A stretch of DNA of 64,000 nt from Zygnema circumcarinatum SAG 698-1b (GCA_037447605.1 CM074820.1:2237779-2301778); one strand, 5' to 3'; shown: positions 20,087-64,000, counted from the first letter of the stretch. A program made the numbers and translations. Notes: generated by a model from the letters alone, not told the origin.

Positions 20087-20095
20087 ACACTAGCA

Positions 20096-20160
20096 CATCC
20101 CATCCCCATCCCCATCCCCATCCCCATCCCCATCCCCATCCCCATCCCCATCCCCATCCC
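20096..20160. repeat. (CCCATC)n microsatellite, ~10-11 units
   Basis: Read directly; lies just upstream of the SABRE ATG. Confidence 0.95.
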
Positions 20161-36480: not shown

Positions 36481-36678
36481 TTGATTTCAAATTCTCGTTC
36501 TCCAAATTCAGTTTTGGACCTTTTTGAGTTGTGACACCCGCAACAGGACTGCTGACCTATACACACATATTCCGTTATTTATAACTTTTTTGTATTTTAC
36601 CTTTTTCGACCGGTTTTTTTTTTTGAATCTAGCTACAGTGTCTGCCCTATCCACAAATCGTTTAATTTCAATTTCTCG
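36481..36678 (-). repeat. Diverged, inverted copy (~1.1 monomers) of the 174-bp satellite
   Basis: Aligns by eye to the reverse complement of the monomer: cgttctcc..ttcag..tggac..gtgacac..gcaa..cctatacac..ccgttat.tataacttttttgt.ttttac..ctacagtgt..cacaaa..tcaattt..cgttctccc. Confidence 0.8.
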
Positions 36679-38461
36679 TTCTCCCAAATTGACTCAAACT
36701 TTCTGTGCATACGGCGGACACACTGTAGAGTAACGCTGAGAAATTTCGGTGCAAAAAAGTAAAAGACAAAAACGTTATATATAACGGAGTGGACGTGTGT
36801 AGGAACGCAACCTATTGCACGTGTCACAAAAACGTCCATATCTGAATAGGGAGAACTCTTAACAGACTCAAACGTTTTGTGCATACGGCGGACACACTGT
36901 AGAGTGACTCTAAGAAATTTCGGTGCAAAAAAGTAAAAGACAAAAAAGTTATGTATAACGGAGTGGACGTGTATAGGAACGCAACCTATTGCAGGTGTGA
37001 CATAAACGTCCATATCTGAATAGGGAGAACGCCAAATTGACTCAAACTTTTTGTGCATACGGCGGACACACTGTAAAGTGACGCTGAGAAATTTCGGTGC
37101 AAAAAAGTAAAAGACAAAAAAATTATATATAACGGAGTGGACGTGTACCGGAACGCAACCAATTGCACGTGTCACAAAAACGTCCATATCTGAATAGGGA
37201 GAACGCCAAATTGACTCAAACTTTTTGTGCATACGGCGGACACACTGTAAAGTGACGCTGAGAAATTTCGGTGCAAAAAAGTAAAAGACAAAAAAGTTAT
37301 GTATAACGGAGTGGACGTGTATAGGAACGCAACCTATTGCACGTGTCACAAAAACGTCCATATCTGAATAGGGAGAACGCTTAACAGACTCAAACGTTTT
37401 GTGCATACGGCGGACACACTGTAGAGTGACGCTGAGAAATTTCGGTGCAAAAAAGTAAAAGACAAAAAAAGTTATATATAACGGAGTGGACGTGTATAGG
37501 AACGCAACCTATTGCACGTGTCACAAAAACGTCCATATCTGAATAGGGAGAACGCCAAATTGACTCAAACTTTTTGTGCATACGGCGGACACACTGTAGA
37601 GTGACGCTGAGAAATTTCGGTGCAAAAAAGTAAAAGACAAAAAAGTTATATATAACGGAGTGGACGTGTATAGGAACGCAACCTATTGCACGTGTCACAA
37701 AAACGTCCATATCTGAATAGGGAGAACGCCAAATTGACTCAAACTTTTTGTGCATACGGCGGACACACTGTAGAGTGACGCTGAGAAATTTCGGTGCAAA
37801 AAAGTAAAAGACAAAAAAGTTATGTATAACGGAGTGGACGTGTATAGGAACGCAACCTATTGCACGTGTCACAAAAACGTCCATATCTGAATAGGGAGAA
37901 CGCTTAATTGACTCAAACTTTTTGTGCATACGGCGGACTCACTGTAGAGTGACGCTGAGAAATTTCGGTGCAAAAAAGTAAAAGACAAAAAAGTTATATA
38001 TAACGGAGTGGACGTGTATAGGAACGCAACCTATTGCACGTGTCACAAAAACGTCCATATCTGAATAGGGAGAACGCCAAATTGACTCAAACTTTTTGTG
38101 CGTACGGCGGACACACTGTAGCGTGACGCTGAGAAATTTCGGTGCAAAAAAGTAAAAGACAAAAAAGTTATATATAACGGAGTGGACGTGTATAGGAACG
38201 CAACCTATTGCACGTGTCACAAAAACGTCCATATCTGAATAGGGAGAACGCCAAATTGACTCAAACTTTTTGTGCATACGGCGGATTCACTGTAGAGTGA
38301 CGGTGAGAAATTTCGGTGCATAAAAATAAAAGACAAAAAAGTTATATATAACGGAGTGGACGTGTATACGAACGCAACCTATTGCACGTGTCACAAAAAC
38401 GTCCATATCTGAATAGGGAGAACGCCAAATTGACTCAAACTTTTTGTGCATACGGCAGATT
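36679..38461 (+). repeat. 174-bp tandem satellite array, ~10 monomers
   Basis: The landmark GAGTGGACGT occurs at 36787, 36961, 37135, 37309, 37484 and 37658 (spacing 174, once 175). Monomers are highly similar. Confidence 0.98.
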
Positions 38462-39538
38462 TGTTAAAGCAGGGGTCTGCTCCCCGCTTCCGGCTCCACC
38501 TTGCGTGTCGCCCTCCATTGGAACTTGAGTTCCCACTGATGAAGACATTTAACTCTCAAAGCTCTACCTTACTTCACTCATCGCCCATAACTACAGAATG
38601 AAGCTTCAAGATAAGCACAGCGGAAATCACAAAGAGAGAGTGTTAGGAGAAAGCTCACAGCTCTAAAACTCCTTATAATAAAATGTCTTCCCCACAATGA
38701 AATTCTTCCACTACTTCAAGGTCCCTCTTACTCACTACCTCACGACACAAGTGTAGGCAGCCTAGCAGCACGAGCAGGTTCTGAATAAGACCCAAGACTA
38801 TGATTGAGTAGTGTACGTGGGTTACTTCCCATAATAAAACTACGCACTATATAATATGGCATCCGTGACGTGACACACATGTCACGTCCCGTCCGCCATT
38901 GCAAACCCATGCACCGAGTCTGAGTGGGCGCACTAAAAAATAGCGACTAGCTAGCTGCTTCGTAAACCTACGGCGGCGCCGACCTAGTTCTTGTCGGATC
39001 GTACATCCGTCCGTACTGTTTCGNNNNNNNNNNNNNNNNNNNNNNNNNNNNNNNNNNNNNNNNNNNNNNNNNNNNNNNNNNNNNNNNNNNNNNNNNNNNN
39101 NNNNNNNNNNNNNNNNNNNNNNNNNNNNNNNNNNNNNNNNNNNNNNNNNNNNNNNNTTAGTGTGTGCCATACAATGTCTAACTATCATACACTAACACTA
39201 ACAATCCCCCTCTTGGGACTCAGTTCCTCATGGGCCCTAGCCCAATCAACCTGCTGTTCACTAGTAGTGTCTCCCCGCTGACCCCCTTAGTCAACATGTC
39301 TGCAGCCTGCTCTTTTGTTCCTACAAACTTCACCACTATCATCCCTTCCTCTACCAACTCTCGCACATAATGATATTGCACCCTAATGTGCTTGGTTCTT
39401 TTATGGAATACAGGGTTTTCCATAAGAGCTATAGATGACTAGTTGTCCGTAAAAAGAGTCAATGGTGTTTGTGGTCGCTTACATTCATCAAAGAAATGTT
39501 GGAACCACATCCCCTCCTTCGCTGCGTGGCACGCTCCC
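38462..39538 (-). mobile_element. Ty1/copia family A: 3' LTR (38462-39203, contains N gap), PPT and RNase H end, interrupted at 39539 by a family B LTR
   Basis: LTR termini TGTT...AACA; purine tract aagaggggga at 39204-39214; ORF 39220-39423 PVFHKRTKHIRVQYHYVRE...ADMLTK is the copia RNase H tail. Confidence 0.9.
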
Positions 39539-42500
39539 TGTTGGTGCAGGGACTCCTCCACTGCTGCCGTCCGTTCCTCCATTCGGGTCACCCTCCATCG
39601 GAGTTCGCGTTCCAATTGATGATGACATTTCCAAATCCCTCACATTCACTCATAGCCCATTTTACTCACAGAGTGAATCACAGCAATAATGCACAGCGGA
39701 ATAACAGAGAGAAAAGGATAGGAGAAAGCTCCTGGCTCTAAAACTCCTTAATAGTGAATTCACTCATACATTGAGAGACCCCCTCTCAAATCGGCCGCTC
39801 AGCAATCTCACAGCTCACTACCTCGCAGCACGAGCAAGTGTAGTGTCGCAACACGAGCGAACAGCATAACAGAGACTACAACAGCCTGAATGAATTGTTG
39901 ACCTACACAACAAAAACAAACCTTAAATACTATGTCACTTCACACGTGACAACATGCTACGAAGCTTCACAACATCGACTAGCGGCCTGCAAGGGCCCTA
40001 TCCCGATCCTAATCNNNNNNNNNNCGCTACCGAGTCCTGCAACTTGGAGCTCCACGAAATCGCTCCACCTCCATACAGGTAAATGAAACCTGAAGTCGAG
40101 CGCGATGTATCTACATCACCACCCCAATCTGAGTCTGTATAGCCAATCACCCTGGTTGGCCCCCTCTCGTACCTGATCCCATAATCAAGCATCCCTCTCA
40201 CATATCTGAATATCCTCTTCACGGCCTCCCAATGCTCGAGGCCCGGATTCTCCATGAATCGGCAGGCCGAGCTCACTGCTTTCGCCAGGTCCGGACGCGT
40301 TCCAATCATAAGGTACATCAGACTCCCAATCGCAGACCTGTAAGGCACTCCGAACATCTTCTGCGCCTCTGCTGCACTCGAAGGTGACATCTCCTTCGAC
40401 AATCTAGTGCCTATCTCCATCGGGCTGGAGCATGGCCTAGAATCCTCCAAATGGAACCGGGCAAGGACATCCGATGCATACTTCTTCTGACACAAGAATA
40501 AGCTGCCATCCTGCCCCCTCTTCAGCTGCATCCCAAGCAGATACTGCGCCTCACCCAAATCTGACATCTTGAAGTTTGCCTGAAGCAACTCCTTCAAGGA
40601 ACTGATTCTTTCAAGCGAGAGGCTCACCATTATGAGATCGTCAACATAGATCCCGACGAACATGATGTCCGCCCCCTCTCCTTGACGGTACACGGAATGA
40701 TATGTTTCGAATCGGTTGAAGCCATTCCACCTCAGAAGATCATCTATCTTCTCGTACCACACTTTGGGCGCCTGCTTCAAACCATATAGGCTTTTCACTA
40801 GTCGACAGACTAGGTGTTCCTTTCCTGGGACCACCTTCCCCTCTGGCTGCTCCATGTAGATCTCTTTCGTTAGATCTCCGTACAGGAATGCCGTCTTGAT
40901 GTCCAGCTGATGGACATGCATTCCTTCAGCCGCTGCAATGGAAATCAAGGCTCTCAAGGAGTTGAACTTTACCACTGGAGCGAAAGTCTCCACGTAGTCA
41001 ACTCCATACTTCTGGGCGTATCCCTTCGCCACTAACCGCGCCTTGTATCTGTCCACGCTTCCGTCTGCCTTCCTCTTGACTTTGAAGACCCATTTGCAGC
41101 CAATAGCTCGCCTCCCTTGAGGCAGCTTCTCCAACCTCCACGTGCCGTTCTCTATCAAGCTGTCCCACTCGCTATCGATCGCCACCCGCCATTTGTCGCC
41201 ATCGACTCCGTCGTGCGCTTCCTCAAAGGTCTGTGGCTCCGTGATCATAAAGCAATGGGCAATTCCCACAAGNNNNNNNNNNCGCTACCGAGTCCTGCAA
41301 CTTGGAGCTCCACGAAATCGCTCCACCTCCATACAGGTAAATGAAACCTGAAGTCGAGCGCGATGTATCTACATCACCACCCCAATCTGAGTCTGTATAG
41401 CCAATCACCCTGGTTGGCCCCCTCTCGTACCTGATCCCATAATCAAGCATCCCTCTCACATATCTGAATATCCTCTTCACGGCCTCCCAATGCTCGAGGC
41501 CCGGATTCTCCATGAATCGGCAGGCCGAGCTCACTGCTTTCGCCAGGTCCGGACGCGTTCCAATCATAAGGTACATCAGACTCCCAATCGCAGACCTGTA
41601 AGGCACTCCGAACATCTTCTGCGCCTCTGCTGCACTCGAAGGTGACATCTCCTTCGACAATCTAGTGCCTATCTCCATCGGGCTGGAGCATGGCCTAGAA
41701 TCCTCCAAATGGAACCGGGCAAGGACATCCGATGCATACTTCTTCTGACACAAGAATAAGCTGCCATCCTGCCCCCTCTTCAGCTGCATCCCAAGCAGAT
41801 ACTGCGCCTCACCCAAATCTGACATCTTGAAGTTTGCCTGAAGCAACTCCTTCAAGGAACTGATTCTTTCAAGCGAGAGGCTCACCATTATGAGATCGTC
41901 AACATAGATCCCGACGAACATGATGTCCGCCCCCTCTCCTTGACGGTACACGGAATGATATGTTTCGAATCGGTTGAAGCCATTCCACCTCAGAAGATCA
42001 TCTATCTTCTCGTACCACACTTTGGGCGCCTGCTTCAAACCATATAGGCTTTTCACTAGTCGACAGACTAGGTGTTCCTTTCCTGGGACCACCTTCCCCT
42101 CTGGCTGCTCCATGTAGATCTCTTTCGTTAGATCTCCGTACAGGAATGCCGTCTTGATGTCCAGCTGATGGACATGCATTCCTTCAGCCGCTGCAATGGA
42201 AATCAAGGCTCTCAAGGAGTTGAACTTTACCACTGGAGCGAAAGTCTCCACGTAGTCAACTCCATACTTCTGGGCGTATCCCTTCGCCACTAACCGCGCC
42301 TTGTATCTGTCCACGCTTCCGTCTGCCTTCCTCTTGACTTTGAAGACCCATTTGCAGCCAATAGCTCGCCTCCCTTGAGGCAGCTTCTCCAACCTCCACG
42401 TGCCGTTCTCTATCAAGCTGTCCCACTCGCTATCGATCGCCACCCGCCATTTGTCGCCATCGACTCCGTCGTGCGCTTCCTCAAAGGTCTGTGGCTCCGT

Positions 42501-45500
42501 GATCATAAAACAATGGGCAATTCCCACAAGGTCAGCTGAATCTGAAGGCACTCTTCGATGAGGCTTGCCCCTTGTACAATACCCATCTGGTCGCCTGCCG
42601 GAAGCTGTGGGCTTGCTCCCTACCTCCGCGCCACTTTGGGTGTCACCCCATTGAATCCTTGAGTTCCTAATGATGAAGACATTCAAACACTCAAAGCTCT
42701 ATCTTACTTTTACTCATCGCCATAACAATGTAATGGAAGCTACAAGACAAGCACAGCCGAAATCACAATGAGAGAGTGTTAGAGAAAGCTCACTACCTAA
42801 AACTCCTTATAATAAAACCGCTCTTCCGCTTAATGAAGTTCTCCCAATACTCAAGCAACCTCTCACTACCACCACGACACAAGTGTAGCAGCCAGCAGCA
42901 CGGAAAGGTGCAATGTAATAAGACCCGACGGTGACAAAGTAGTGTGGGTGGGTTACTCCCATAATAAAAACTACGACTATATAATATGGCGTCCGTGACG
43001 CGACACACATGTCACGCCGCGTCCGCCATTGCAAACCCATGCACCGAAGTCCGGAAAGTGGGCGCACTCGTGAATAGCGAATCGCTAGCTGCCTCAGAAA
43101 CCTACTTCTGCTAGCCGCCGTAATTCTGAAGTTCTTGTCGCTCGCATCACCGTCTGCATAAGATCGCCAAGCCGGGCCACATCTTCCCGCCGCCGCATAC
43201 CTCGCCGTGAAGACTGGGAATCCTCGCTGACCCACATTGCGAGTGGTCCACGGGCGCATTCCGTTCGGGCCGCCAAATATCTTCGCGTCAAGCTCAAGGC
43301 CAAGAACTTTGCGCTTCTCCGCTAAGCTTTCGCGCCGCTGGCCATTAATTCAATCAAAGTCCTCAAGGTTCTGCATTTCATAATCCGCTGCCGCCGACTC
43401 ATCAGTTGCGCCGTCCGCTCAAGGCAAGACATTACATGTGTCAGCTGCCAAGGTTCAATCGGGCCAGCCGTTTCATACTCACAGCATGGGCGCACTCACC
43501 CGGAAGTCGAAAGTAACCCCATTATTCCTAAATCTAAGAGCACTACGCCTAGCGCATCTCATGTTCTACAAACCGAAAATTCACAACAAGTTAGTGTGCC
43601 ATACAATGTCTAACTATCATACACTAACACTCAACAATCCTCTCTTGGGACTCGCCTCATGGCCTCTAGCCCAATCAATCATTGCTCACTAGTAGTGTGT
43701 GTCTCCTCACTCACCCCTTTTGGTCAACATGTTCTGGCAACCGCTTCTTTTGTTCCTACAAACTTCACCACTATCATCCCTTCCTCTACCAACTCTCGCA
43801 CATAATGATATTGCACCCTAATGTGCTTGGTTCTCTTATGAAACACAGGGTTCTCCATGAGGGCTATAGATGACTGGTTGTCCGTAAAAAGAGTCAATGG
43901 TGTTTGTGGTTGCTTACATTCATCAAAGAAATGTTGAACCACATCCCTCCTTCGCCGCATGGCACGCCCTTACGTATTCCTTCGCGTTCTACGCCACCTA
44001 ATCTTGTAACTTCAGCCCATGAGATCGCTTCCTCCGCTCAGAAATTATTAAATCCTAACGCCGATCGCGGACGGTCCACATCACTCCCCAATCGTGAGTC
44101 GTAATTCATCACTCCGTTGGCCCCTCTTTCAAATCCGAGATCGTAATCCAAGGTCCTTTCATTTAACTGCAACTGGCCACTCTTCCCCAATGTTCGTGAC
44201 CGATTCTCCATGAACCGAATACTTGCCGAGTTTCACTACGGCTAAGTCGACGCAGTACCTATCATCGATACATTAAACTTCCCCGGGATGCCGACCAGAC
44301 GGTAATTCGCACATTCTCGCATCCGCGACTGCCGCCGCATCATATCTCGACATCGTGATTCGACCATCGGATTCTCAACAAGGACGCACTCCTCCATTTT
44401 GAACCTGGCAAGTACATCTGCGGAGTACTTCTTCTGTCAATGATATAAACTGCCGTCCTGCCCCCTCTTCAACTGCATTCATAAGAGATACTGCGCCTCC
44501 CCTAGATCCGACATTTTGAAGTTAGCTTCCAAACGCCGCTTCAAATCATTGATTCTCTCCAATGAGAGGCTCACCATTATGAGGTCGTCCACGTAGATCC
44601 CAACGTACATGAGATCCGCCTCTTCTCCTTGTCGGTACACGGAATGATCCGTCTCGAATCGCGCAAATCCGTTACTCCGCAGGAGGTCATCAATTTTCTC
44701 GTACCAAATCCTGGGCGCCTGTTTCAGTCCGTACAGACTCTTCACAAGACGACAAACGATGCTCTCGCCGACAACTTCTTCGGTCGTGTCGGTGATCTCC
44801 TCGGTGATCTCCGCATGTAAACGCCAGCCTTGATATCGAAGTTGATGTAATGCAGCATCCCCTGGGCCGCCGCGAATCGATATTAGGGGTACCGAGGGAG
44901 TTGAATCTCACCACGGGCGGCCCCGTGTAGTCGATTCCGTACGCTCACGAAGTCTTCGCCACCACCGCTTCTTTGTATCGTCGACTTCGTCTCGCTTTTC
45001 GCTTCACCTCGAATAATCTAATTTGCATCCAATGGCCCTCCTTCGACAGCCTCAAGTTTCATGTGCCGCTTCCTCCAAAGAACCGTCCCATTCGCCGCCA
45101 TTGCCGCCGCCACTTCTCTCTCCATCGCACTCGCCGTATGCCTCAAAGGTTTTATGTTCGGGTGATCATAAACAGCAAGCGCCCGCGAGGTCCAACAGTT
45201 CAGAGGGCACTCTTTCCCTGCAGACTAGGTTAGTTCAAGGGCCCTGTAGTGATCAGGCCTCCTCACCACACGGGTGCTCCTCCGAGGTCCTTGCGCCTCC
45301 GGCTCCTCGTGTTGAAGAAAATCCCCGGGACAAACCCGGGAGGCATGCTCGACAACATAGCCTCTCTCACCGCCTCCAAATCCTCGCACTCATGCCCATG
45401 CAAAGGTACAGCTGCCTATTCTCCTCGGCCGGGACGTGTGAGTGTGTAGTGGTGCCGCTCGCCGGTTGGGTGCTCCCGCTTGCGCTCTGCCCAACTCCCA

Positions 45501-48500
45501 CGCCGCCCACGCTCGGGCTGCTCGCTCGCCTCGGGCTCAGCGTGGCCGATTCCTCCGGGTTGACCTCGAGAGGCGCCCATGCCTTCTTTGCCGGTTCCAC
45601 ATCCTCGCATACGTCCAAATTCCTCGCTTTGGGGTGCGGGTCTCACTCTAGCCGAGTCACCGCCCTCTCGCCCAATCGTAACGCCTCGAAGCTCGCGACT
45701 TCGCTTGCTCGAGGGTTCCACACCCGTAGGTGCGATCGCCCATGTTGTAGCCGGTGAAGGTACCCTTCCACGCTCGGGGTCGAACTTTCTTTCTCGCCGC
45801 TTCGCACTGCCGCACGCCAGCCGCCCAGCGTCTTCGTGGGACACCGTGGGTTTCCTCACACTCCACACCTCTTCAGGAACCTGATCCTTAAGCACAGAAG
45901 ATGGGCATCTATTTCTAAGGTAAGTTGCGGTCATCACCGCCTCTCCCCAAAAAGATGCCGAGAAGGGGGAATCTATCAAGATGGTCCGCTATGTCCCCGG
46001 CCCTATTGACCCTCTCGCCAGCCTATTACTTTGAGGGAGTAAGGAGCGTAAAATTATGCCTTATTCCGCTGAAAGCCTTCAAGTACCCGGGCCAAACCTC
46101 TTTCTGATTCTGACTTCTCCTTGTCCGAAAGGCAGCTGTTTTCGCTTCTCAATCGCTTCTCGGCTTCCATCTCGAAGTTCTGCCAATCTCCTAACGCTCC
46201 TCAAAGCTCGTGATTTGTACTTCAGAATTTTCACCCAAATTTTCTCCTCAAAAATCGCCGAGGAAGGTGATGAAGTAGCGAAGCTCCTCCACTCGTTGCC
46301 GGTGTCACGGGTCCACACAAATCGGTATGAACCAATTCCAGTTTCTCTTGCGCGTGAAATGACTCCTCTCCACTCCTCGAGAAAGGTCTCCTGTGCGCTT
46401 TCCCCTCTACACACACTTTGCAAAAGCCTAGCCTCTTCTCAACTACGCCAACGCCTAACCCAAGCGGACTAGCCCTTTGCAAAGAAGTCAAGCAGTGTAA
46501 AATTCCCTATGGTTTAGATGACTGCTCATTTATGCCAAAGATTTATCAAGACCCTCGCCATGCCTATCACACCCTCATCTTTCTCTCCTATAATGAAGGT
46601 AATACGTGCCTCCCTTCATACCCTCAATGTAAACCGCCTCCCCGGACTCTAGGTGAGTAGCGCTACACAAGACTTCTCCTTAAAGGTGACTTCGCACTCT
46701 CTTACATACTTGACTCAATGTATGAAGTTCTCGCTTTCGTGTCGAGGTATGAAGTACGCCACCGGCGCACACAACCGCTTCTTTCTTCTTCAGAGATGAT
46801 AGAGTCACTCAGGATCATCTTTAGCTACACTTCCTTTTGTAATCGCCAATTCTCTCCGTTGCCGAAAGTGAATATCCGTCCTTCCAAGGTGTCCAGCCGT
46901 AGAGAATATTCGGCTGTCGCCACACATGCGGGAAGCGCCAGAAATGACGCCTATACGCTTCTGCATCCGTAACCCGGATCTTCCCAACAAAATCGGGACA
47001 GCCACAAGATGAGATTCGCTTCCACCGCCACTCTGCACTGCGGTTTTGTGGCCTCGCTTGCATTTAAAGTGTATTCCCTTGAATCCCTTTCTAACGGATG
47101 ACGCATGCTCTCCACCCCATCTTGGGTGTTCTTGTTTTGTAATACGTCGAGAAGTGGGTCTGCCTTGCCAAGACGTAGTAACACGCCCCCGCTAGGCATG
47201 CCTCCCCACGGTTCCGCTTCTCGCGCACCTCCTCTTCAATCCTTGTCGTGGAGTGCGCTGCCAACACCTTCTCCCTAAGTGCCTCCAACGTTCGACAGTT
47301 GTTCTCCTCTTGATCCTCCGCCACTTGCTCAAGGGTCACGTTCAAGTAGGAATGTACCCCAAGAGCCGCGAACTGCTACATCAAATCGCCGTGCAGTCCC
47401 CTGGGAAATCAAATATTGATTTTATGGTTCCTCTAATTCAAGTGGTAGCTGCTATAAATCTTCCAGTATTAGAGTATCAAATCTGACCATATATTCACTC
47501 TTCCGGGAGGACATCTTCATTTTCCCAAGCTGCGTGTAAAGGCTGACTATCGTTACGTTATCCTTTACATCATACATCTCCTCTAAGCATCTCCACATAG
47601 CATGTGAAGTCTTAAGGTCATACAACATGGAAGAGAGGACTTCCCTCACGCCATGACGACCGTGAGGGCCTTGTTGTCCTTGGTCTCCTCTATCCGGCGA
47701 AGGCCGTGGTCAACTCCGGACCGCCCGCCAGGCTCCTCCGGCCGCATCACCGTGCCTTGATGGTGCCGGGCTAACGTATTCAACGCCTTGCCCACGAAAG
47801 CAAGCGGGAAATGCCAAAACGCCATTCCCACCCCTTGTAGTCCAACCATCAACGCCGATGAACTTCACGCGGTCTTCCCTCGCCACCTTGGCTGATACCA
47901 CTTGTTGAAGCAGGTTTACTCCCACTTCCTCGCGCCACCTTGGTACGCCTCCATTGGAACTTGAGTTCCCAATGATGAAGACATCTAAACATCACAAAGC
48001 TCTATCTTACTTCACTCATCACCATAACAATGTAATGAAGCTACAAGACAAGCACAAATGGAAATCACAATGAGAGAGTGTTAGAGAAAGTTCACGGCTC
48101 TAAAACTCCTTATAATAAAACTGCTTTCCTCCCAATAATGAAGTTCTCCTTCCACTACTAAGGTCCCTTCACTCACTACTCACGTATTACTGCGTAGGGC
48201 AAAACTTAAGAAGACGAAAGTGTGCACACTGTAATAAGACCCGGTGACTATGACAAAGTAGTGTGGGCGTGGTTACTTCCCTATACAAAACTATGACCAG
48301 AGGGTCAGAGTGAGGCCTGCGACGTGACACACATGTCACGCCGCTGGGCCCAGCCATTGCAAACCCATGCACCGAAGTCCGGAGGGGCGCATCAGTGAAT
48401 AACGACCGCTAGCCGGGCCAGAAACCTACGCAGCAGCCGCCACCTGTTCTTGCTCTGCCGCATACCCGTCTCTGCATAAAAAGATCGCCAAGCTGGGCCG

Positions 48501-50570: not shown

Positions 50571-50833
50571 TTAGTGTTAGTGTATGATAGTTAGACATTG
50601 TATGGCACACACTAACTTGTTGTGGTACTCAGTTTGTAGAACATGAGATCTGCTAGGCGTAGTGCTCTTAGATTTAGGAATGTCGGTGCTCTGACTTAGG
50701 TGAGTGCGCCGCGAGTGCGCGGAGTACGAACGAGCGGCGCTGATTGGACGCGGCGCTGACACATGTGCGCGGAGAACGGACGCGCAACTTTGATTGGTCG
50801 AGGCGCGGCCGCGGATTCGCGAAGTACGGACGC
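50571..50833 (+). mobile_element. 5' part of a family A LTR in + orientation, inserted in the protease region of the family B element
   Basis: Begins tgttagtgttagtgtatgatagttagacattg, the reverse complement of the A-LTR terminus; ends at an N gap. Confidence 0.8.
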
Positions 50834-50843
50834 NNNNNNNNNN

Positions 50844-51731: not shown

Positions 51732-51741
51732 NNNNNNNNNN

Positions 51742-54700: not shown

Positions 54701-57266
54701 GTGAAATGACTCCTCTCCACTCCTCGAAAAGGGTCTCCGATGCGCCTTCCCCTCTACACACTCTTTGCAAAAGCCTAGCTCCTTCTCAACTACGTCAACG
54801 TCTAACCCGCGGACCAGCCCCTTTGCAGCAAGCTGTTGCAGTCCCCTATGGTTTAGATGACCAAGTCTACGATGCCAAAGATTTACTGCACCCTCAGTTA
54901 CAGCCATCACACCCTCATCTTCTTCTCTCACATAATGAAGGTATCACAGGCCTCCTTCTCATACCCCTCAAACAGCCGCTTCCCCGACTCCAAGTGAGTA
55001 GCTACGCAAGACTTCTCCTTAAAGGTGACTTCGTACCCCCTCTTACATACTTGACTGACTGACATGAAGTTCTGTTTCAGATCAGGGGTGTGAAGTACGT
55101 CACCGATGCACAACCGCTCTTCTCTTTCTTCTTCGTAGATGATAGAGCCGTCTCCGAGGATCATCTTTACTACACCTCCTTTTGTAGCTGTCACTCCTCT
55201 CGGTTGCAGTGAGCAGTCTGGGTCCTCTCAAGGTGTCGGCGTAGAGAACATTAAACTGTGCGCCACACGTATGCGTGGAGGCGCCCGAGTCGTCGACCAT
55301 GGCCGCCGGATCCGTAACCTGGATCTTCCCAACAAAATCAGAATGTTCAGTCAGCATGAGATTCGTCTCCACCGCCACTCTGCAATCTGTGCTCTTGTGG
55401 CCTCGCTTCTTGCATTTAAAGCAGATTCCCTTGAATCCCTTCTTGACGGATGACGATGCTCCTCCACCCCGATCTTGGGTGTTCTTGTTCTTGTAACAGT
55501 TGGCCGAGAAGTGGCCCGTTTTGCCGCACGTGTAACATGCTCCCGCAGGGCGTTCCCCTTGGTCTGCCCTCGGTGCACCTCCTCTTCGAGCTTGACGTGA
55601 GTGCAGCGCCAACACCTTCTCCTTGGTGCCTCCAACGTCTTGGACAGTGTTCTCCTCCTTGATCCTCCGTTTCACTTGCTCAAGGGTCATCACGGTGTTC
55701 GTTAGAACAGTCCTAAGAGCTCCAACTGCTACATCAAATCGGCCAGGTAGTCCCCCTAGAAACTGGCTGATTTTATGGTCTCCCTCTAACGGTTTTTGCA
55801 GCGCTATAAATCTCTCCATTAGAGTATCAAATCTGACCATATATTCACTCAGCTTCTCTTCCGAGGACATCTTCATTTTCCCAAGCTGCGTGTAAAGGCT
55901 AACTATCGTTACATTATCCTTTACGTCATACATCTCCTCTAAGCATCTCCACATAGCATGTGAAGTCTTAAGGTCATACAGCATGGAAGAGGGACTTCCC
56001 CTCACGCTCATGACGATCTGGGTGAGGGCCTTGTTGTCCTTGGTCCTCCATCTGGCGAGGCAATGTGAACTCCATTGCCGCTCCGTGGCTCCCTCGGCTG
56101 CGGTGCCTTGATGGTGCGTCAACGTACTAGCGGCCCTTGCACCCACGAGCAAGGAACTAGCCGCCATCTCCACCTTGTAGTCCGAACCATCGAACGCTGG
56201 GATGCTGAACTTCACGTGGTCTTCCTCGCCACCTTGGGCTCTGATACCACTTGTTGAAGCAGGGGTTTGCTCCCCACTTCCGGCGCCACCTTGGGTGTCG
56301 CCCTCCATTGGAACTTGAGTTCCCACGGATGAAGACATTCAAACACTCAAAGCTCTATCTTACTTCACTCATCGCCCACTAACAAGAATGAAACAAGACA
56401 AGCCGCGGCCGGAAATCACGATGAGAGAGTGTTAGGAGAGAAAGCTCACGGCTCTAAAAACTCCTTACTATAATAAAAGCTGTCTTCCCACAATGAGAGT
56501 TCTCCCACTTCTTCAAGGTCCCTCTCACTCACTACCTCCACGACCTGAAGTGTAGGCAGCTAGCGGCCTGGCGAGGCCGCAGAGGCAAGACCCGAGACTA
56601 TGACAAAGTAGTGTGGGTGGGACACTTCCCATAATAAACTATACCTTTATATAATATGGCGTCCGTGGCTATTGACACACATAACCGCGTCGCGTCATAA
56701 ATGCAAACCATGCAGTGCGAGTGGGCACTACGGGGAATAGCTGACCGGCTAGGCGCCTGCGTAAACCTCACGGCGTAGCCGACCTAGTTCTTAATGCGTA
56801 CCATTGTCCGTGCAGTATAAGCCATTGCGCCCGGCGCTCCTTCCCGGTCTTAAGCCCTTGAGCACCTCGGCCGTACACTCGAACTTCAGCGGACCCACAT
56901 TGCGAGTGGTCCACGTCGTATTCAGGTTCGCCGAATATCTTCTATATTACCGTTTCAGCCTTAACTTTCGCGCTCAGCGTTCAGCGCCCGCGCGCGTTTC
57001 AATCAAAGTGCGGCGTCCGTGCCAGCGAATCAGCGGCGGCGCTCGGTAATCAAAGTTGCTGGCGTCCAGTTCTCGGCGCGTAATGTGTGGCCGTCAATCA
57101 GCGCCTTCGTTATTCCTCCGGCGCGCTTTCAGCGCACTCTTTGAGTTAGAGCACCGACATTTCGTCTAAGAGCACTACTGCGCGGATCTCATGTTCACCA
57201 CAAGCGGAGTACCCGCAACAAATTGAGTGTGGTACCCATACAATGTCTAACTATCATACACTAACA
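51742..57266 (-). mobile_element. Ty1/copia family A element (5' LTR 56252-~57266, PBS, gag-PR ORF 55100-56338, INT, RT, RNase H); 3' end missing or joined to a gag fragment at 51742-51935
   Basis: PBS tggtatcagagc at 56238-56249; gag with UBN2-like region and two CCHC knuckles; protease DSGAS; INT LVHTDLCGP; RNase H SSTEGEY...ADMLTK. Confidence 0.88.
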
Positions 57267-57269
57267 CCA

Positions 57270-60200
57270 ATGTAGCCTTCCACTAACACGAATGCATTTG
57301 TGCCGCGACTATCCGTGCAAGATGCCGCAGGCCGCTACTCAAAGGGTTCTCATACATTCAGCCTTCCGGCCGAGCAACCCAATCGGCAAATAAAACCTTT
57401 GGAGGAACTCGCATCAACAAGGTCACGCTTGTGACAGTGGTCTCTGGGTTGAGAGGAACGCCGGGCTGGCGGTGGTCGCTGACCGCCGGTGACTGGCTGC
57501 CCCTCTAAATAGCACCGCCATGTCCTCGGGAGCGTGGACCAATCGCAGCGCCTCGCTCTCATGCGTAATAGTTGGCGCCAACGGATTCATTTTATGCTTT
57601 CATACTAAAGGTGTCAATGGAGAGATTTATACGCCGCAAAAACCGGGTAGAGGGAGATCATAAAATCAGCCGCTTCTAGGGGATCGTCTCGGCCGATTTG
57701 ATGCAAGAAGGTAGCCTTAGGATCAAGTTTCTAACGAATACCGTGATGGCCCTGAGCAAGGGAACGGAGGATCAAGGGTGAGAACACTGCCCAAGACGTT
57801 GAGGCACCGAGGAGAAGGTGTTACGCCGCGACTACCTACAAGTTCAAGAGGAGGTGCGCCGAGAGCGCATCATGGGGAACACTATGAGCGCAGTTACACG
57901 GCGCAAGACGGGCCACGCCGCATCGTTACAAGAACAAGAACACCTAAGATCGGGTGGAGGAGCATCGCCATCCGCCAAGAAGCGGATTCAAGGGAATCTC
58001 GCTTAATGCAAGAAGCGAAAAGGCCACAAGAGCACAGACAGGTGAGTATGGTGGAGACTAATCTCATGCCGATCAACATTCCGATTTTGCTGGGAAGATC
58101 CGTGCTACTTGACCAAGCGCCATGGTCGACGACTCGCGCTTCCACGCGACATGTGGCGACAAGCCAATGTTCTACGCCGACACCTTGAGTAGGGACTGTG
58201 ATTCGCTCACTTCAAGAAATCGGAGAGGGAGTGACAGCTACAAAAGGAGGTAGTAAAAGATGATCCTGAGACGCTCTATCATCTGCTACTTAAGAAGAAA
58301 GAGAAGAGCGTTGTGCATCGGTGACGTAATTCATACTCCTGACATGAAACAGAACTTCATGTCTGTTAGTCAAGTATGTAAGAGGGGGTACGAAGTCACC
58401 TTTAAGGAGAAGTCTTGTGTAGCTACTCACCTAGAGTCGGGGAAGCGGCTGTTTGAGGGGTATGAGAAGGGAGGCCTGTATTACCTTCATTATAGGAGAG
58501 AAGAAGATGAGGGTGTGATGGCTGTAACTGAGGGTGCAGTAAATCTTTGGCATCGTAGACTTGGTCATCTAAACCATAGGGGACTGCAACAGCTTGCTGC
58601 AAAGGGGCTGGTCCGCGGGTTAGACGTTGACGTAGTTGAGAAGGAGCTAGGCTTTTGCAAAGAGTGTGTAGAGGGGAAAGCGCACAGGAGACCTTTCTCG
58701 AGGAGTGGAGAGGAGTCATTTCACGCGCAAGAGAAACTGGAATTGGTTCATACCGATTTGTGTGGACCCGTGACACCGGCAACGAGTGGAGGAGCTCGCT
58801 ACTTCATCACCTTCCTCGACGATTTTTCGAGGAAAATTTGGGTGAAAATTTCAGTACAAATCAAGCTGAGCGCTCGTAGATTGGCGTAATCAGACATGAG
58901 CGAGATGTCAGAACTCAAGACGCCAAGGCTGACAACGGAGGGGAATTCAAGTCAAGGAGTTCGGGCGGGTACTTGAAGGCTCATGAATAAGGCATAATTT
59001 TCTGCCTCTACTCCCCAAAGTAATGAGCCGCCGAGAGGGTCAATAGACGCCGTGACATGGCACCCACCATGCCGAGCAGATTCCCCTTCCGCATCCTTTG
59101 GGGAGAGAGGCGGTGATGACCGCAACCTTACCTTAGCCAGATGCCCATCTTCCAGGCTTAAAGATCAGGTTCCTCAAGAGGTGTGGAGTGGGAGGGAAAC
59201 CCACGGTGTCCCACCAAGACCTTTTGAGCGCGTCAGCCGGGTCGACAAGGCCAAGGCGGAAAGTGCGGTGAAGAGAAAGTTCACCCACGCAGCCGTGAAG
59301 GGTACCTTCGGCTACAACATGGACAGTCGCACCTACCGGGTGTGGAATCCTCGAGCAAACGAAGTGCAGAGCTCGAGAGACGTTACGGTGGACGAGAAGG
59401 GGGCGGTGACTCGGCTAGGTGAGACCCGCACCCCAAAGGCAGGTTTGGAAATTGTGTACGAGGATGTGAGACCAAGAAGGCATGGACGCCTCCTCGTGTC
59501 CCAAGCCGAGGAGATCAAGACGCCTCGAGAGCTTGGTGGGAGTCGGTTTAAGCAACGCCAACGTGGAGGCGGCCGTGGGAGTTGAACCCGAGGAGCCGCA
59601 AGCGGGGGAGCCGCAACCTTCGACGGGGACGGCGCGACTACACACTCACCTGTCCGACCAGGAGAACTCGGCCGAAACCGTACCATTGCATGGGCAGGAG
59701 TCTGAGGATTTGGAGACGGCTGAGAAAGAGGCTATGTTGTCGAGCATGCCTCTCGGGTTTGTCCCGGGGATTTTCTTCAACACGAGGAGCCGGAGAGCGC
59801 AAGGACCTCGGAGGAGCACCCGTGTGGTGAGGAGGCCTGATCACTACAGCCTCGCAGACAACCTAGTACAGAAAGAGTGCCTACGCATCGCCGACTCCGC
59901 TGAGCCTAATCGCTTATGATCACCTAACCGCTAAACCTTGAGGAAGCCGCCATCTACTCAGGTCGGCGGAGAGAAGTGGCAGCGTTAACTCCATACGAAA
60001 GTGGACAGTTTTGTCGAGAACGTACATGGCGACTTGAGGAGCTGCCGAGGGGAAGGAGGGCCATTGATGCAAGTGGGTGTTCAAGGTGGTTTTGGGCGGA
60101 TCGAGTGTCGACCGAGCATAAAGCGCGTTGGTGGCGGCGGGTTTCACCAGTACGGAATCGACTACACGGACCTGCCCTCGGTAGAAGTTCCAACTCTCCG

Positions 60201-60829
60201 CGTTCTAATATCGACGGGTAGCTACCGAGGGGATGCACGTGACATCGCAACCGGAGCATCAAGACTGTTTTCAGACGGGAGATCTCACTGGTGAGATCTA
60301 CATGGTACAATTTCAAAGGAAAGTTGTCCCGCGTGAGCATCTCGTTTGTCGTCTTGTGAAAAGTCTGTACGGACTGAAACAGGCGCCCAGGATTTGGTAC
60401 GAGAAAATTGATGACCTCTTGAGGAGTAACGGATTTGCGCGATTCGAGACGGATCATTCCGTCTACCGACAAGGGGAAGAGGCGGATCTCATGTACGTTG
60501 GGATCTACGTGGACGACCTCATAATGGTGAGCCTCTCATTGGAGAGAATCAATGATTTGAAACAGCTTTTGGAAGCTAACTTCAAAATGTCGGATCTAGG
60601 GGAGGCGCAGTATCTCCTAGGAATGCAGTTGAAGAGGGGGCAGGACGGTAGCTTATTTCTTTGTCAGAAGAAGTACGCCGCAGATATACTTGCCAGGTTC
60701 AAAATGGAGGAGTGCCGTCCTTGTTCGAGTCCGATGGAGATCGGAATGCGATTGTCGAGAGATATGATGCCGGCGACAGATGCGGAGGTACAGAGAATGT
60801 ACGGAGTGCCGTACAGATCGGCAATCGGG
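57270..60829 (+). mobile_element. Partial Ty1/copia family A internal region in + orientation (gag remnant, INT, RT)
   Basis: ORF 58260-58889 WHRRLGHLN...LELVHTDLCGP...FLDDFSR; ORF 60233-60829 LYGLKQ...YVDD. The left part is very noisy. Confidence 0.85.
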
Positions 60830-60839
60830 NNNNNNNNNN

Positions 60840-62420
60840 CGACGGAGTCGATGGCAATAAGTGGCGGGTTGCGATTGATAGCAAATGGGACAGCCTGATC
60901 GAGAACGGCACGTGGAGATTGGAGGAGCTGCCTCAAGGGAGGCGAGCTATCGGCTGCAAATGGGTCTTCAAAGTCAAAAGGAAGGCAGACAGAAGCGTGG
61001 ATAGGTACAAGGCGCGATTAGTGGCGAAAGGATACGGCCAGCAGTATGGGATTGACTACATGGAGACGTTCGCTCCAGTGGTAAAGTTCAATTCCGTGAG
61101 AGCCTTGATTTCCATTGCAGCGGCTGAAGGAATGCACGTTCATCAATTGGACATCAAGACGGCATTTCTGTATGGTGATCTCACGGAAGAGATTTACATG
61201 GAGCAGCTGGAGGGGAAGGTCGTCCCCGGGAAGGAGCACCTAGTCTGTCGACTAGTGAAGAGCCTGTATGGCTTGAAGCAGGCGCCGAGAGTGTGGTACG
61301 AAAAGATTGACGATCTTTTGAGGAGGAATGACTTTGCTCGGTTTGAGACAGATCATTCAGTGTACCGTGAAGGAGAGGGGGCAGACATCATGTTCGTAGG
61401 GATCTATGTCGACGATCTCATCATGGTGAGCCTCTCCCTTGAAAGAATCAGATCTTTGAAGGAATTGCTACAGGCAAATTTCAAAATGTCAGATCTGGGA
61501 GAGGCGCAGTATCTGCTGGGAATGCAGCTGAAGAGGGGGCAGGATGGAAGCTTGTTTCTATGTCAAAGGAAGTATGCTTCAGATGTGCTTGCCCGNNNNN
61601 NNNNNCGGACGCGGCCGCGGAGCGAATTGAAGAATTGGCGCGACGCGCGAATCTGCGCGCGAATCGGAAGTGACGCGGCGCGGCGTCAACCTTTGGATTG
61701 GACGATTCGGACTTGACACGATGCAACGTCAAAATGTCGGCGCGCGATTCATCATTGTACGGAGCGGCGTCAAATGTCGGTGGCGTGCGACGACGCGGAG
61801 TTTGACGCGTCATCTATCTTGGAGGCGCGGTCAGATCCTACGGCGCAAGACGTGGATTAGCTTAGAGGCCGAGTCGGATCTGACGGAGGAAACGTACGGG
61901 ATCCGTGTGAGCCGACGAGGATCCGACGGCGCAGGATTAGGATCGGGATAGGGCCCTTGCGGGCCACTAGCCGGAGTTGTGAGCTTCGTAGCATGGTAGT
62001 GTCACGAATGTTGTGACAAAGTATATAGTGTGTTGTTTTTGTATGGTTGTTATCTTAACTTCTGGATCACCAGCGTAGCTATTGTAGACTCTGAGAAGCT
62101 GTTGCTCGTGTTAATTAACACTACACTTGCTTGTGCTGCGAGGTAGTGGGCTTTTGAGTTTATTGGGCTAGTTGAGAGAGGGTCTCTCAATTGTGGTGTT
62201 AAGATCATTATTAAGGAGTTTTAGAGCCGAGAGCTTTCTCCTATCCTTTTCTCTCTGTTATTCCGCTGTGCATATTCTGTGAGGTTCACTCTGTGAGTAA
62301 AATGGGCTATGAGTGAATGTGAGAGTTTGGGAAATGTCATCATCGATTGGAACGCGAACTCCGATGGAAGGTGATGCGAGTGGAGAAGCCGGCAGCAGTG
62401 GAGGAGTCCCTCCACCAACA
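60840..62420 (+). mobile_element. Ty1/copia family B: RT fragment (60840-61595) and 3' LTR (~61606-62420) joined directly to the satellite
   Basis: RT resembles that at 41283-42530. The LTR ends ...ggagtccctccaccaaca, immediately followed by satellite aaaagtaaaagac. Confidence 0.85.
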
Positions 62421-63260
62421 AAAAGTAAAAGACAAAAAAGTTATATATAACGGAGTGGACGTGTATAAGAACGCAACCTATTGCACGTGTCACAAAAACG
62501 TCCATATCTGAATAAAGAGAACGCCAAATTGACTCAAACGTTTTATGCGTACCGCGGACAAACTGTAGCGTGACGCCGAGAAATTTCGGTGCAAAAAAGT
62601 AAAAGACAAAAAAATTATATATAACGGAGTGGACTTGTATAGGAACGCAACCTATTGCACGTATCACAAAAACGTCCATATTTGAATAGGGAGAACGCCA
62701 AATTGACTCAAATTTTTTGTGCATACGGCGGATTCACTATAGAGAAACGCAGAGAAATTTTGGTGCACAAAACTGAAAGACAAAAACGTTATATATAACG
62801 GAGTGAACGTGTGTAGGAATGCAATCTATTGCACGTGTCAAAAAAACGTCCATATTTGAATACGGAGAACGCCAAATGGACTCAAACTTTTTGTGCATAC
62901 GGCGGACACACACTAGACACACGCGGAGAAATTTCGGTGCACAAAACTAAAAGACAAAAACGTTATATATAACGGAGTGGACGTGTGTAGGAATGCAACC
63001 TATTGCACGTGTCAAAAAAACGTCCATATTTGAATAGGGAGAACGCCAAATTGACTAAAACTTTTTGTGCATACGGCGGACACACAGTAGAGTGACGTTG
63101 AGAAATTTCCGTGCATAAAACTAAAAGACAAAAAAGTTCTATATAACGGAGTGGACGTGTATACGAACGCAACCTATTGCACGTGTCACAAAAACGTCCA
63201 TATCTGAATAGGGAAAACGCCAAATTGACTCAAACTTTTTGTGCGTACGGCGGACACACT
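62421..63260 (+). repeat. Second block of the 174-bp satellite, ~4.8 monomers, same orientation as the first block
   Basis: Same monomer, with extra variants (gtgcacaaaact, aggaatgcaa, gtcaaaaaaacg, atatttgaat). Confidence 0.97.
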
Positions 63261-63293
63261 TGTTGAAGCAGGGGTCTGCTCCCCACTTCCGGC
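63261..63293 (-). mobile_element. 33-bp 3' terminus of a family A LTR joined to the satellite
   Basis: tgttgaagcaggggtctgctccccacttccggc matches the A-LTR ends at 38462 and 56252. Confidence 0.85.
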
Positions 63294-64000
63294 TGTTGGT
63301 GGAGGGACTCCTCCACTGCTGCCGGCTTCTCCACTCGCATCACCTTCCATCGGAGTTCGCGTTCCAATCGATGATGACATTTCCCAAACTCTCACATTCA
63401 CTCATAGCCCATTTTACTCACAGAGTGAACCTCACAGAATATGCACAGCGGAATAACAGAGAGAAAAGGATAGGAGAAAGCTCTCGGCTCTAAAACTCCT
63501 TAATAATAATCTTATCAACACAAAATGAGAGACCCCCTCTCAAATAGCCCAATAAACTCAAAAGCCCACTACCTCGCAGCACAAGCAAGTGTAATGTTCA
63601 GCAACACGAGCATCAGCTTCTCAGAGTATACAATATCTACTTTGATAATCAGAAGTTAAAGATTAACAACCAAACAAAACAACACACTATATACTATGTC
63701 ACAACATCCGTGACACTACCATACAACGGCTCCCAACATCGCTAGCGGCCCGCTAAGGGCCCTATCCTCATCTCATCCTGCTGCCGATCCTCGCCGCTCA
63801 CACGGATCCCGTGACGCTTCCTCCGCCACGCCCGCCACTCGGCCTTCTGTTAATCCACGCCTTGCGCCAGGATCCACCTCGCCCAAGATTGATGAGACGC
63901 CATTAAAACTCCGCCGCCGCGACGCCACCCCACATTCACGCCTGCATAATGATGCCAGAATCGCTAAGGCCGACATTTTGACGCCGCGATCGCGCCAAGT
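63294..64000 (-). mobile_element. Family B LTR inserted into the family A LTR, running off the window
   Basis: Starts tgttggtggagggactcc; the first ~200 bp are the exact reverse complement of 62221-62420. Confidence 0.9.

Follow-up and report, generated by a model that had tools for sequence, protein, structure and literature searches.

In Rhynchospora, the 172-bp Tyba satellite together with CRRh constitutes a repeat-based holocentromere, and moss centromeres are, to our knowledge, based on transposable elements (TEs), without a dominant satellite. The Bryco copia elements of mosses offer a precedent for centromere-seeking retrotransposons (cited in bioRxiv 10.64898/2025.12.07.692804). In Dictyota dichotoma and Schizocladia ischiensis, centrophilic copia clusters are found at centromeres that were located by Hi-C and contain no satellite DNA (bioRxiv 10.64898/2025.12.07.692804). 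For the Tal1 element, targeting was established through de novo insertions, CENH3 over-expression, and swaps of the integrase C-terminus (PMC11735389).

Zygnematophytes, which form the sister group of land plants among the algae, are reported to be holocentric (PMC7392213; PMC13519894), so that their chromosomes may lack one regional centromere each. For part of this class, old cytology described diffuse centromeres, and the only recent hint is the dispersed 128-bp repeat of Spirogyra. In Spirogyra pratensis, this repeat (TR-128) forms 2-kb arrays every 256 kb, which the authors consider holocentromere-like (PMC13519894).

The present analysis concerns a 64,000-nucleotide stretch of Zygnema circumcarinatum SAG 698-1b DNA (the window), where a 174-bp satellite is interrupted by Ty1/copia elements. 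The locus looks like a plant-type centromere region. It had been put forward as an undescribed satellite-copia system, and within the searchable literature no prior description was found.

The 174-bp Satellite

Tandem Repeats Finder (TRF) delimits two blocks with a period of 174 bp, at 36684-38456 (block 1; 10.2 copies, 95% matches, score 3257) and at 62420-63260 (block 2; 4.8 copies, 89% matches). Mapping of the monomer consensus places the satellite at 36684-38459 and 62420-63260, both on the plus strand, and at 36473-36685 as an inverted relic, the rest of the window being free of it. On the final feature map, block 1 (36684-38459, plus strand, 10.2 monomers) has its last base at monomer position 35, and block 2 (62421-63260, plus strand, 4.8 monomers) extends from monomer position 71/72 to position 41. 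The relic (36473-36685, minus strand) is a degenerate piece of ~1.2 monomers that matches the reverse-complemented monomer at 72% identity, and it forms the outer edge of the array, immediately behind a (CAGC)n microsatellite. The period, found in 15 monomers across both blocks, corresponds to about one nucleosome. The monomer has a GC content of 41% and contains A6, A4, A6, and A5 tracts plus one T5, in agreement with the A-tract-rich 174-bp satellite of the original prediction. Its dyad symmetry exceeds that of shuffled sequences (z -2.67, 2/200).

According to segmentation and an identity matrix, the monomers of block 1 are 89-99% identical to one another. As its flanking monomers are 94-99% alike, homogenisation of the array is still ongoing. 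A variant is common to monomers 2 and 5, and partly to monomer 8; beyond this, an exact higher-order repeat in block 1 was not confirmed. Block 2 has diverged further, with 84-92% identity among its own monomers. Derivation of the satellite from these copia elements was rejected for the window, where no copia part resembles the monomer. A 24-nt satellite word did not occur in JGI metagenome contigs, and no chromosome-end repeat lies beside the array within the window. The sole telomere-like run, a 9-nt variant at 34080-34166, is located within gene-like DNA, 2.5 kb from the array.

The Copia Elements between the Satellite Blocks

The two blocks are separated by ~24 kb of nested, decayed Ty1/copia DNA made up of at least 8-11 pieces. 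Their LTRs fall into two types that are related to each other, type A of ~1.03 kb and type B of at least 0.7 kb, and the RT sequences of the A and B elements are ~75% alike in DNA. Type A LTRs end in TG...CA (TGTTAGTG...CTTCAACA). The PBS (TGGTATCAGAGC complement), presumably of the initiator-Met tRNA type, lies one base off the LTR at 56252 and has a 2-nt deletion in the copy at 47903; purine runs adjoin the 3' LTRs. Between 39998 and 61716, the ORFs give Pfam matches to RVT_2, gag_pre-integrase, SH3_retrovirus, and Retrotran_gag_2, the last accompanied by zinc knuckles; PF07727 (RVT_2) is found on four of them (E 1.5e-75, 2.1e-75, 1.6e-71, and 1.7e-36). The domain order on the plus strand is of copia type, with integrase (58788-59396) followed by RT (60068-60829), and the minus strand reads gag (56338-55100), integrase (54477-54331), and RT/RNase H (52891-51968). 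All classified TE pieces belong to one copia clade, while ~2.3 kb of the pile is unclassified; Pfam and tblastn revealed no gypsy, MITE, DNA-transposon, or other TE protein domain in the window.

The leftmost piece is the type A 3' LTR of element A1 (38462-39203, minus strand), whose outer terminus TGTTAAAG joins the satellite. It contains a 133-N gap (39024-39156) that, given the colinearity of this LTR with 42614-43636, hides ~430 bp. The internal 3' end of A1 follows (39204-39538, minus strand), with a PPT-like run beside the LTR and a tblastn match to the end of copia RNase H. Nested in A1 is the type B 3' LTR of element B1 (39539-40014, minus strand), with its terminus TGTTGGTG at 39539. 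It is 80-81% identical to 61935-62420 (inverted) and 63293-63767, and is cut by the gap at 40015-40024. The RT/RNase H region of B1 (40025-42600, minus strand) gives RVT_2 matches at E 1e-75 on both of its ORFs. Within it, 40025-41272 and 41283-42530 are 99.9% identical and bounded by 10-N gaps; this ~1.25-kb repeat is an assembly duplicate, a single sequence entered twice.

Copia Y (type A, 42601-48950, minus strand) comprises a 3' LTR at ~42601-43636, a decayed interior with weak tblastn matches to RT and integrase, a PBS by 47903, and a 5' LTR at 47903-48950, the LTR pair being 74% alike. It is followed by DNA with no self-match and no Pfam match on any ORF (48951-50054), and by a fragment (50055-50504, minus strand; gag_pre-integrase and Pol_BBD) from the protease/pre-integrase part of a third copia, more distantly related; the fragment is 71% identical to 54783-55198. 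The first 265 bp of a further type A LTR, Z (50569-50833, plus strand), match 57013-57270 in inverted orientation and are cut by the gap at 50834-50843. Another unclassified segment, free of self-matches and Pfam matches, has a gap on each side (50844-51731), and behind the gap at 51732-51741 lies an isolated gag fragment (51742-51937, minus strand) with 94% identity to 55445-55640.

Copia X (type A, 51942-57288, minus strand) consists of an interior (51942-56251) and a 5' LTR (56252-57288), its 3' LTR being missing. The interior retains an RT remnant, an integrase remnant, an intact 412-aa gag ORF (55100-56338), and the PBS (56238-56249). The A-like copia W (57616-60829, plus strand) retains the gag end and integrase, with RT reaching as far as the gap at 60830-60839, and is 81% identical to X in inverted orientation. 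Copia B2 (60840-62420, plus strand) starts with an RT piece (60840-61595, RVT_2) that is 88% identical to the B1 RT, lacks its RNase H at the gap at 61596-61605, and ends with a type B 3' LTR covering at least 61711-62420. Beyond block 2, the first 33 bp of a type A LTR, A4 (63261-63293, minus strand), are joined to the satellite; their alignment with the A1 junction continues across the joint. Nested in A4 is the type B LTR of copia B3 (63294-64000, minus strand), an 86% inverted match to 61711-62420 that runs past the window end.

Seven gaps interrupt the pile, one more (61596-61605) than had initially been listed. Two of the joins (60830-60839 and 61596-61605) either break colinearity or lack ~700 bp: at one, RT position 627 is followed by RT position 335, and at the other, RNase H is missing. 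Scaffolded across these gaps, the inner order of the pile is unreliable. As both ends of the pile consist of satellite joined to an LTR, the entry of copia into satellite does not depend on this order.

The copia copies in the pile are old: their LTRs are 74-86% alike, their reading frames are broken, and target-site duplications are unrecoverable. Copia Y, the only element with both ends in the window, is flanked by TCGCC and CCTCC, which do not match; for the remaining elements, truncation, nesting, or an end beyond the window limits the target-site duplication test. Where the window differs from the family majority in one public run (X1), it has A/T for a majority G/C at 20 places and the reverse at 7, so that deamination-type changes are in excess relative to this majority. 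The integrase tails in the window are frameshifted. No tRNA gene or Rfam family was found in the window, and tRNA-gene-directed integration is thus no explanation for the pile.

In the neighbouring 36 kb on the left, neither a blastn self-comparison nor a tblastn search with copia proteins (0 matches) detected any copia, consistent with what had been noticed initially. An exact-product look-up of the gag ORF yielded no identical product on record. A word-index search with the gag protein gave none at E 1e-10, probably owing to the choice of candidates, since Pfam recognises the domain. The RT search retrieved distant outside relatives (57% at best), with no same-genome copy among the matches. 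The contig of the best RT match was rejected as a relative, being an unrelated copia of 40% GC without the 174-bp satellite.

Junctions between LTRs and Satellite

Three junctions, all within gap-free stretches, were read directly. On the left, the satellite extends to 38459 and is followed by TT, then by the LTR-A terminus at 38462. At 62420/1, an LTR-B terminus (...CCAACA) at 62420 is followed by satellite, and at 63260/1, satellite up to 63260 is followed by an LTR-A terminus at 63261, this LTR ending after 33 bp at the inverted LTR-B at 63294. The junction at 38461/2 is also spanned, with 0 mismatches, by a 103-nt contig of run X1 with a word depth of 38, that is, at single-copy level. Within the monomer, type A is inserted at position 35-41 and type B at position 71.

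The three LTR termini on satellite that were originally pointed out are thus base-precise and gap-free, although they represent at least two independent events: both LTR-A junctions (A1 and A4) align across the joint and may stem from one ancestral event. This leaves two sure independent insertions into the satellite rather than three, and makes the evidence for site choice thin. Type A and B LTRs also sit within other copia copies (39539, 63294, and ~42601), so that any preference would be for the region, and not for the monomer sequence. Targeting of the satellite by copia families of its own, as originally suggested, is a candidate reading. Copia elements of one clade have entered the satellite at least twice, and each other repeatedly.

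Gene-to-Satellite Edge and Abundance in Public Runs

The array starts ~200 bp beyond unique, gene-bearing DNA. This edge is present, with 0-1 mismatches, in long contigs of four public runs from three studies, and the inverted relic (36473-36685) is crossed from the gene side by long contigs of the four runs. All four runs consist of pre-assembled contigs, and a 4.5-kb stretch was compared with contigs at least 90% alike. Per run, the number of contigs that fit this stretch ranges from 942 to 21,913, mostly on repeats and mostly at more than one place. The summed word depth, which differs from copy number and makes the high-copy call a qualitative one, reaches 2e4-1.4e6 for the satellite and 3e3-1.3e5 for LTR-A, and 26-76 for the neighbouring gene. 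Thousands of variant contigs in the four runs match the satellite and LTR-A, which indicates that both are high-copy genome-wide; the low-copy satellite considered as a counter-possibility at the outset does not hold.

The DNA ~200 bp from the array is carried by runs that resemble transcriptomes, and is apparently expressed. An edge near seemingly transcribed DNA is as compatible with an array margin or with dispersed arrays of the holocentric type as with a regional centromere.

Interpretation of the Locus

We consider it about evenly balanced that the window holds the true outer edge of a high-copy 174-bp satellite chromatin block, of a centromeric or pericentromeric plant-type nature, in which copia elements accumulate in this streptophyte alga with a small genome. 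Such a block would be plant-type centromeric or pericentromeric chromatin. The copia clade would accumulate in it with an integrase steered by local chromatin, as Tal1 is via CENH3, and/or through insertions that are not purged, and the satellite and LTR joints would then have been duplicated along with the array through unequal exchange. Passive retention accounts for the pile equally well. Counting against the centromere reading, the arrays as assembled measure no more than 1.8 and 0.84 kb and adjoin DNA that is apparently expressed.

Subtelomeres and knobs, too, can harbour TE nests within satellites of 170-180 bp. Non-centromeric heterochromatin (subtelomeric, knob-like, or a silent repeat), where copia piled up passively under low recombination and without targeting, is unlikely but deserves serious consideration: the elements are old, decayed, and devoid of target-site duplications, the presence of both LTR types in copia copies implies that the monomer sequence is not the target, and the satellite directly adjoins genes. 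However, the array has no chromosome-end repeat beside it, the 9-nt telomere-like variant being 2.5 kb off, and the pile contains one copia clade only, unlike the unselective build-up expected if other TE classes are common, as reported in Zygnema (PMC11096116). The shortness of the arrays (1.8 and 0.84 kb), ~200 bp from gene-bearing DNA, would also suit a holocentric-type unit, with numerous short 174-bp arrays distributed over every chromosome, each of them serving as a minor site of kinetochore loading, as in Rhynchospora. This recalls the 128-bp satellite of Spirogyra pratensis, with its 2-kb arrays per 256 kb (PMC13519894), and the reported holocentricity of zygnematophycean algae (PMC7392213). 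We nevertheless regard it as quite improbable, as array lengths are unreliable in a gap-ridden, short-read-style scaffold and may be collapsed, and the arrays described for Spirogyra are short and clean, unlike a 24-kb nest of TEs.

A scaffolding artefact, in which real satellite and copia contigs were misjoined and the interrupted satellite is not one physical locus, is suggested by the seven gaps in 24 kb, the 1,258-bp sequence duplicated across a gap, and the two non-colinear joins (RT 627 then RT 335; RNase H missing). We accord it a small probability: the three junctions and the gene edge are gap-free, the gene edge and the 38461/2 junction are carried by independent contigs, and with satellite-to-LTR joints at both pile ends the inner order is immaterial to the core claim.

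Going beyond the edge of a centromeric or pericentromeric block, the 174-bp repeat might be the kinetochore DNA of zygnematophytes, in one domain per chromosome or dispersed as in holocentric chromosomes, and be sought by the A/B copia clade; we hold this to be possible, though doubtful. If true, the algae that are sister to land plants would gain their first centromere known at sequence level. It would also imply that the architecture of a satellite with centromere-seeking copia predates land-plant origin, and would provide a probe for deciding whether centromeres in the class are localised or diffuse, an old question of cytology. The 174-bp satellite and its copia companions are an obvious probe for FISH or CENH3 mapping to distinguish regional from holocentric organisation, and such mapping could reveal whether the centromere-seeking copia of mosses and Arabidopsis predate land plants. 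What the window contributes at present is the anatomy of the locus and a hint at copy number rather than a function.

Comparison with Known Systems

Rhynchospora Tyba and Spirogyra TR-128 likewise form short satellite arrays near genes, Spirogyra belonging to the same algal class, whereas no 24-kb copia nest such as the one found here is described for TR-128 (PMC13519894). Dictyota and Schizocladia share with this locus the presence of single copia families in discrete clusters tens of kb long; their centromeres are satellite-free and Hi-C-located, whereas the locus described here has a satellite and is read from sequence. In the moss Bryco/RLC5 clusters, one copia lineage likewise occupies discrete loci in a streptophyte near the land-plant root (cited in bioRxiv 10.64898/2025.12.07.692804; see also PMC7466625). 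Unlike in moss centromeres, the matrix here is a high-copy satellite.

The Arabidopsis system associates CEN178 with Tal1 (ALE4 lineage) and ATHILA (PMC11735389). Its arrays are Mb-scale, versus kb-scale in the assembly here, and targeting has been proven experimentally for Tal1, whereas the present system is known from sequence alone. In both cases, the satellite is of nucleosome scale (178 bp versus 174 bp here), LTR termini lie directly in monomers, and the invader is a Ty1/copia element without a chromodomain.

Satellite Arrays and Neighbouring Genes

The 174-bp satellite was delimited by Tandem Repeats Finder in two blocks, at 36684-38456 (10.2 copies, 95% matches, score 3257) and, with the same unit, at 62420-63260 (4.8 copies, 89% matches). 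A monomer consensus, built from five monomers of the window and mapped back onto it, covers 36684-38459 and 62420-63260, both on the plus strand, as well as an inverted relic at 36473-36685 (72% identical), and this mapping gave no further satellite matches in the window. The monomer has a GC content of 41%, against 50-56% in neighbouring DNA, and carries A6, A4, A6, and A5 tracts plus a single T5, which bears out the nucleosome-length, A-tract-rich satellite of the original prediction. An imperfect dyad in the second half of the monomer makes it fold, as single-stranded DNA, better than 198 of 200 shuffled sequences (z -2.67). Inter-monomer likeness is 89-99% in the first block (97-99% for the central monomers) and 84-92% in the second. 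There are hints of a three-monomer period in the first block, where a variant is common to monomers 2 and 5 and partly to monomer 8; a clear higher-order repeat is not seen. The inverted relic lies directly 3' of a (CAGC)n run and stands head to head with the first monomer of the plus-strand array; this boundary looks like an old inversion.

Ordinary genes occupy the left 36 kb, among them one for a lipid-transfer protein of the Hobbit/SABRE/FMP27 family at about 24.9-29.7 kb (24879-29653, plus strand); its two open exons are very long (826 and 820 aa) and match Pfam PF10344 (E 7e-73 and 3e-68). As originally claimed, this part is devoid of copia pieces: neither pile matches (blastn self-comparison) nor copia protein matches (tblastn) were found in it. 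It also contains, within 19785-20160, a TCGAAC hexamer array (50 copies, 97% matches), directly followed by (CCCATC)x10, with (TC)x18 located 180 bp beyond the latter. A telomere-variant 9-nt repeat, TAAAAACCC, occupies 34080-34166 (9.7 copies, 94% matches); it is not a chromosome end and is surrounded by gene-like DNA, some 2.5 kb to the left of the satellite.

The Copia Pile

Between the satellite blocks, Pfam identified RVT_2 on four ORFs, gag_pre-integrase on three, a retroviral SH3-like integrase tail on one, and, on a 412-aa ORF that is intact (55100-56338, minus strand), a gag of copia type that includes two zinc knuckles. Comparison with outside copia proteins (tblastn) shows the gene order of Ty1/copia, integrase before reverse transcriptase (RT), on the plus as well as the minus strand. 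Self-comparison and inspection of the termini defined two LTR types. The type-A LTR is about 1.03 kb long (sense strand TGTTAGTG...CTTCAACA), and one base beyond it lies the primer binding site, the complement of TGGTATCAGAGC, which we take to be of the initiator-Met tRNA type. The type-B LTR measures at least 0.7 kb and its terminus reads ...CCCTCCACCAACA. The pile comprises at least 8-11 fragments, namely type-A pieces (A1, Y, Z, X, W, and A4), type-B pieces (B1, B2, and B3), and a protease/pre-integrase fragment of a more distant copia, so that the predicted ~24 kb accumulation of at least 5-6 related copia elements stands. The RT regions of types A and B are about 75% alike in DNA, and all pieces, therefore, belong to one clade.

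The nest is old and decayed. Likeness among copies is 71-89%, with two short stretches reaching 94-96%; element Y, the sole one with both ends, has LTRs that are 74% alike, and no target-site duplication was found at its flanks. In element X, the ATG of the longest gag ORF lies 87 nt inside the 5' LTR (56252-56338), and the reading frame continues across the primer binding site (56238-56249), a downstream start codon being a possible alternative. About 2.3 kb of the pile is unclassified, with no protein-domain match (Pfam on ORFs). Two stretches, 48951-50054 and 50844-51731 (about 2 kb), have no match elsewhere in the window; they may represent host DNA trapped between insertions, an LTR of unknown type, or an element that is non-autonomous.

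Assembly Gaps

Seven gaps interrupt the pile rather than the six originally listed, the additional one being the 10-N gap at 61596-61605, where the order is correct and about 700 bp of RNase H of a B-type element is missing. The gap at 39024-39156 interrupts a single type-A LTR, whose orientation is unchanged across it, and, from colinearity with 42614-43636, hides about 430 bp, not 133. At 40015-40024, the order is also correct (B LTR, then RNase H/RT, minus strand), with part of the LTR and the RNase H end missing. The 10-N gap at 41273-41282 separates 40025-41272 from 41283-42530, which are 99.9% identical: these 1,248 bases are one sequence given twice, an assembly artefact due to an unmerged contig overlap, and the ORFs 39998-41269 and 41223-42686 are, therefore, one RT gene counted twice. 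The gaps at 50834-50843 and 51732-51741 enclose an unclassified 888-bp piece. The join at 60830-60839 is not colinear, passing from about position 627 of an A-like RT to position 335 of a B-type RT. These defects make the inner order unreliable; no gap falls at the gene/satellite edge or at any of the three satellite/LTR junctions, all of which lie within gap-free stretches. The combination of 10-N gaps and duplicated overlaps is consistent with the SPAdes/Platanus scaffolds described for two Zygnema strains (PMC9915684).

Satellite/LTR Junctions

At the left junction, the satellite stops at 38459 (monomer position 35); two bases (TT) lie between it and a type-A terminus at 38462, which is where a minus-strand element has its 3' end. 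On the right side of the pile, satellite starts at monomer position 71/72 immediately after a type-B terminus at 62420. At the far right, the satellite continues to 63260 (position 41) and adjoins a type-A terminus at 63261; only the first 33 bp of this LTR are present before an inverted type-B LTR interrupts it at 63294. A single insertion into an uninterrupted array would not give phases 35 and 71; elements of type A and type B therefore entered the satellite separately, each at least once. All three predicted joins between LTR termini and satellite are direct and gap-free, although the two type-A junctions may be one event: they share their orientation, lie at most 6 phase positions apart, and can be aligned across the joint (about 92%, with a single 4-nt indel), a likeness that may reflect one ancestral insertion copied along with the array, not two strikes at a favoured site.

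Public Sequencing Runs

Sixteen public runs of one organism, all of them pre-assembled contigs, contain the stretch, and four runs from three studies were compared with 34500-39020. In all four, the transition from gene-side DNA to the first monomer is carried by long contigs with 0-1 mismatches, which shows that the array edge is real. The left junction is found without mismatch on a 103-nt contig of run X1 (38432-38534), whose word depth of 38 matches the single-copy level in X1 and which has 28-30 nt on the satellite side, slightly below the 31-nt rule.

Contigs matching the compared stretch at 90% or more number 942-21,913 per run, the majority fitting more than one place, and summed word depth, which is not a copy number, reaches 2e4-1.4e6 for the satellite and 3e3-1.3e5 for LTR-A, against 26-76 for the gene. 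Satellite and LTR-A are both high-copy and variant-rich; a low-copy satellite, which would have spoken against the original prediction, is not what these runs contain. Where the window differs from the family majority in run X1, it has A/T for G/C at 20 places and the reverse at 7, the kind of bias that deamination of methylated cytosines would leave if this copy was silenced. The runs with 33-51 Mb of contigs contain 33-42% of the sampled words, and unique sequence, to the left of the satellite, makes up 40% of the compared stretch, so these runs are probably transcriptomes containing the neighbouring gene, a guess from the numbers.

Centromeric Reading and Known Systems

Overall, the observation of a satellite colonised by copia elements is confirmed, with corrections for the seven gaps, the 1,248-base duplicate, and the possibly shared type-A event. 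A centromeric identity, the pericentromeric case included, is plausible from the sequence, and we would place it midway between likely and unlikely. A holocentric reading of the 174-bp arrays is possible as well, the arrays being short and adjoining genes; holocentric chromosomes have been reported in zygnematophycean algae (PMC7392213). As for the nest, satellite targeting by the copia clade would be one of two equally good explanations, beside passive retention, in which insertions there are simply not purged. Type-B ends also lie inside A-type copies, at 39539 and 63294, and an A-type element inside a B copy at ~42601; if there is a preference, it would therefore concern the region rather than the sequence of the monomer.

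The words centromere and satellite are absent from both Zygnema genome papers (PMC11096116, PMC9915684), and nothing was found in the searchable literature on a 174-bp satellite in algae or on Zygnema centromeres. Centromere-seeking copia elements as a class are already established: Tal1 integrates into CENH3-bound CEN178 arrays, with the integrase C-terminus as determinant (PMC11735389). In a preprint, moss centromeres are described as marked by Bryco copia elements, and single copia families cluster at centromeres in Dictyota and Schizocladia (bioRxiv 10.64898/2025.12.07.692804). In Spirogyra pratensis, of the same algal class, a 128-bp satellite forms 2-kb arrays every 256 kb, read by its authors as holocentromere-like (PMC13519894). 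Given these precedents, the kind of system is already known, and the novelty, if the reading is true, would be the presence of such a satellite-plus-copia system in the zygnematophyte lineage.
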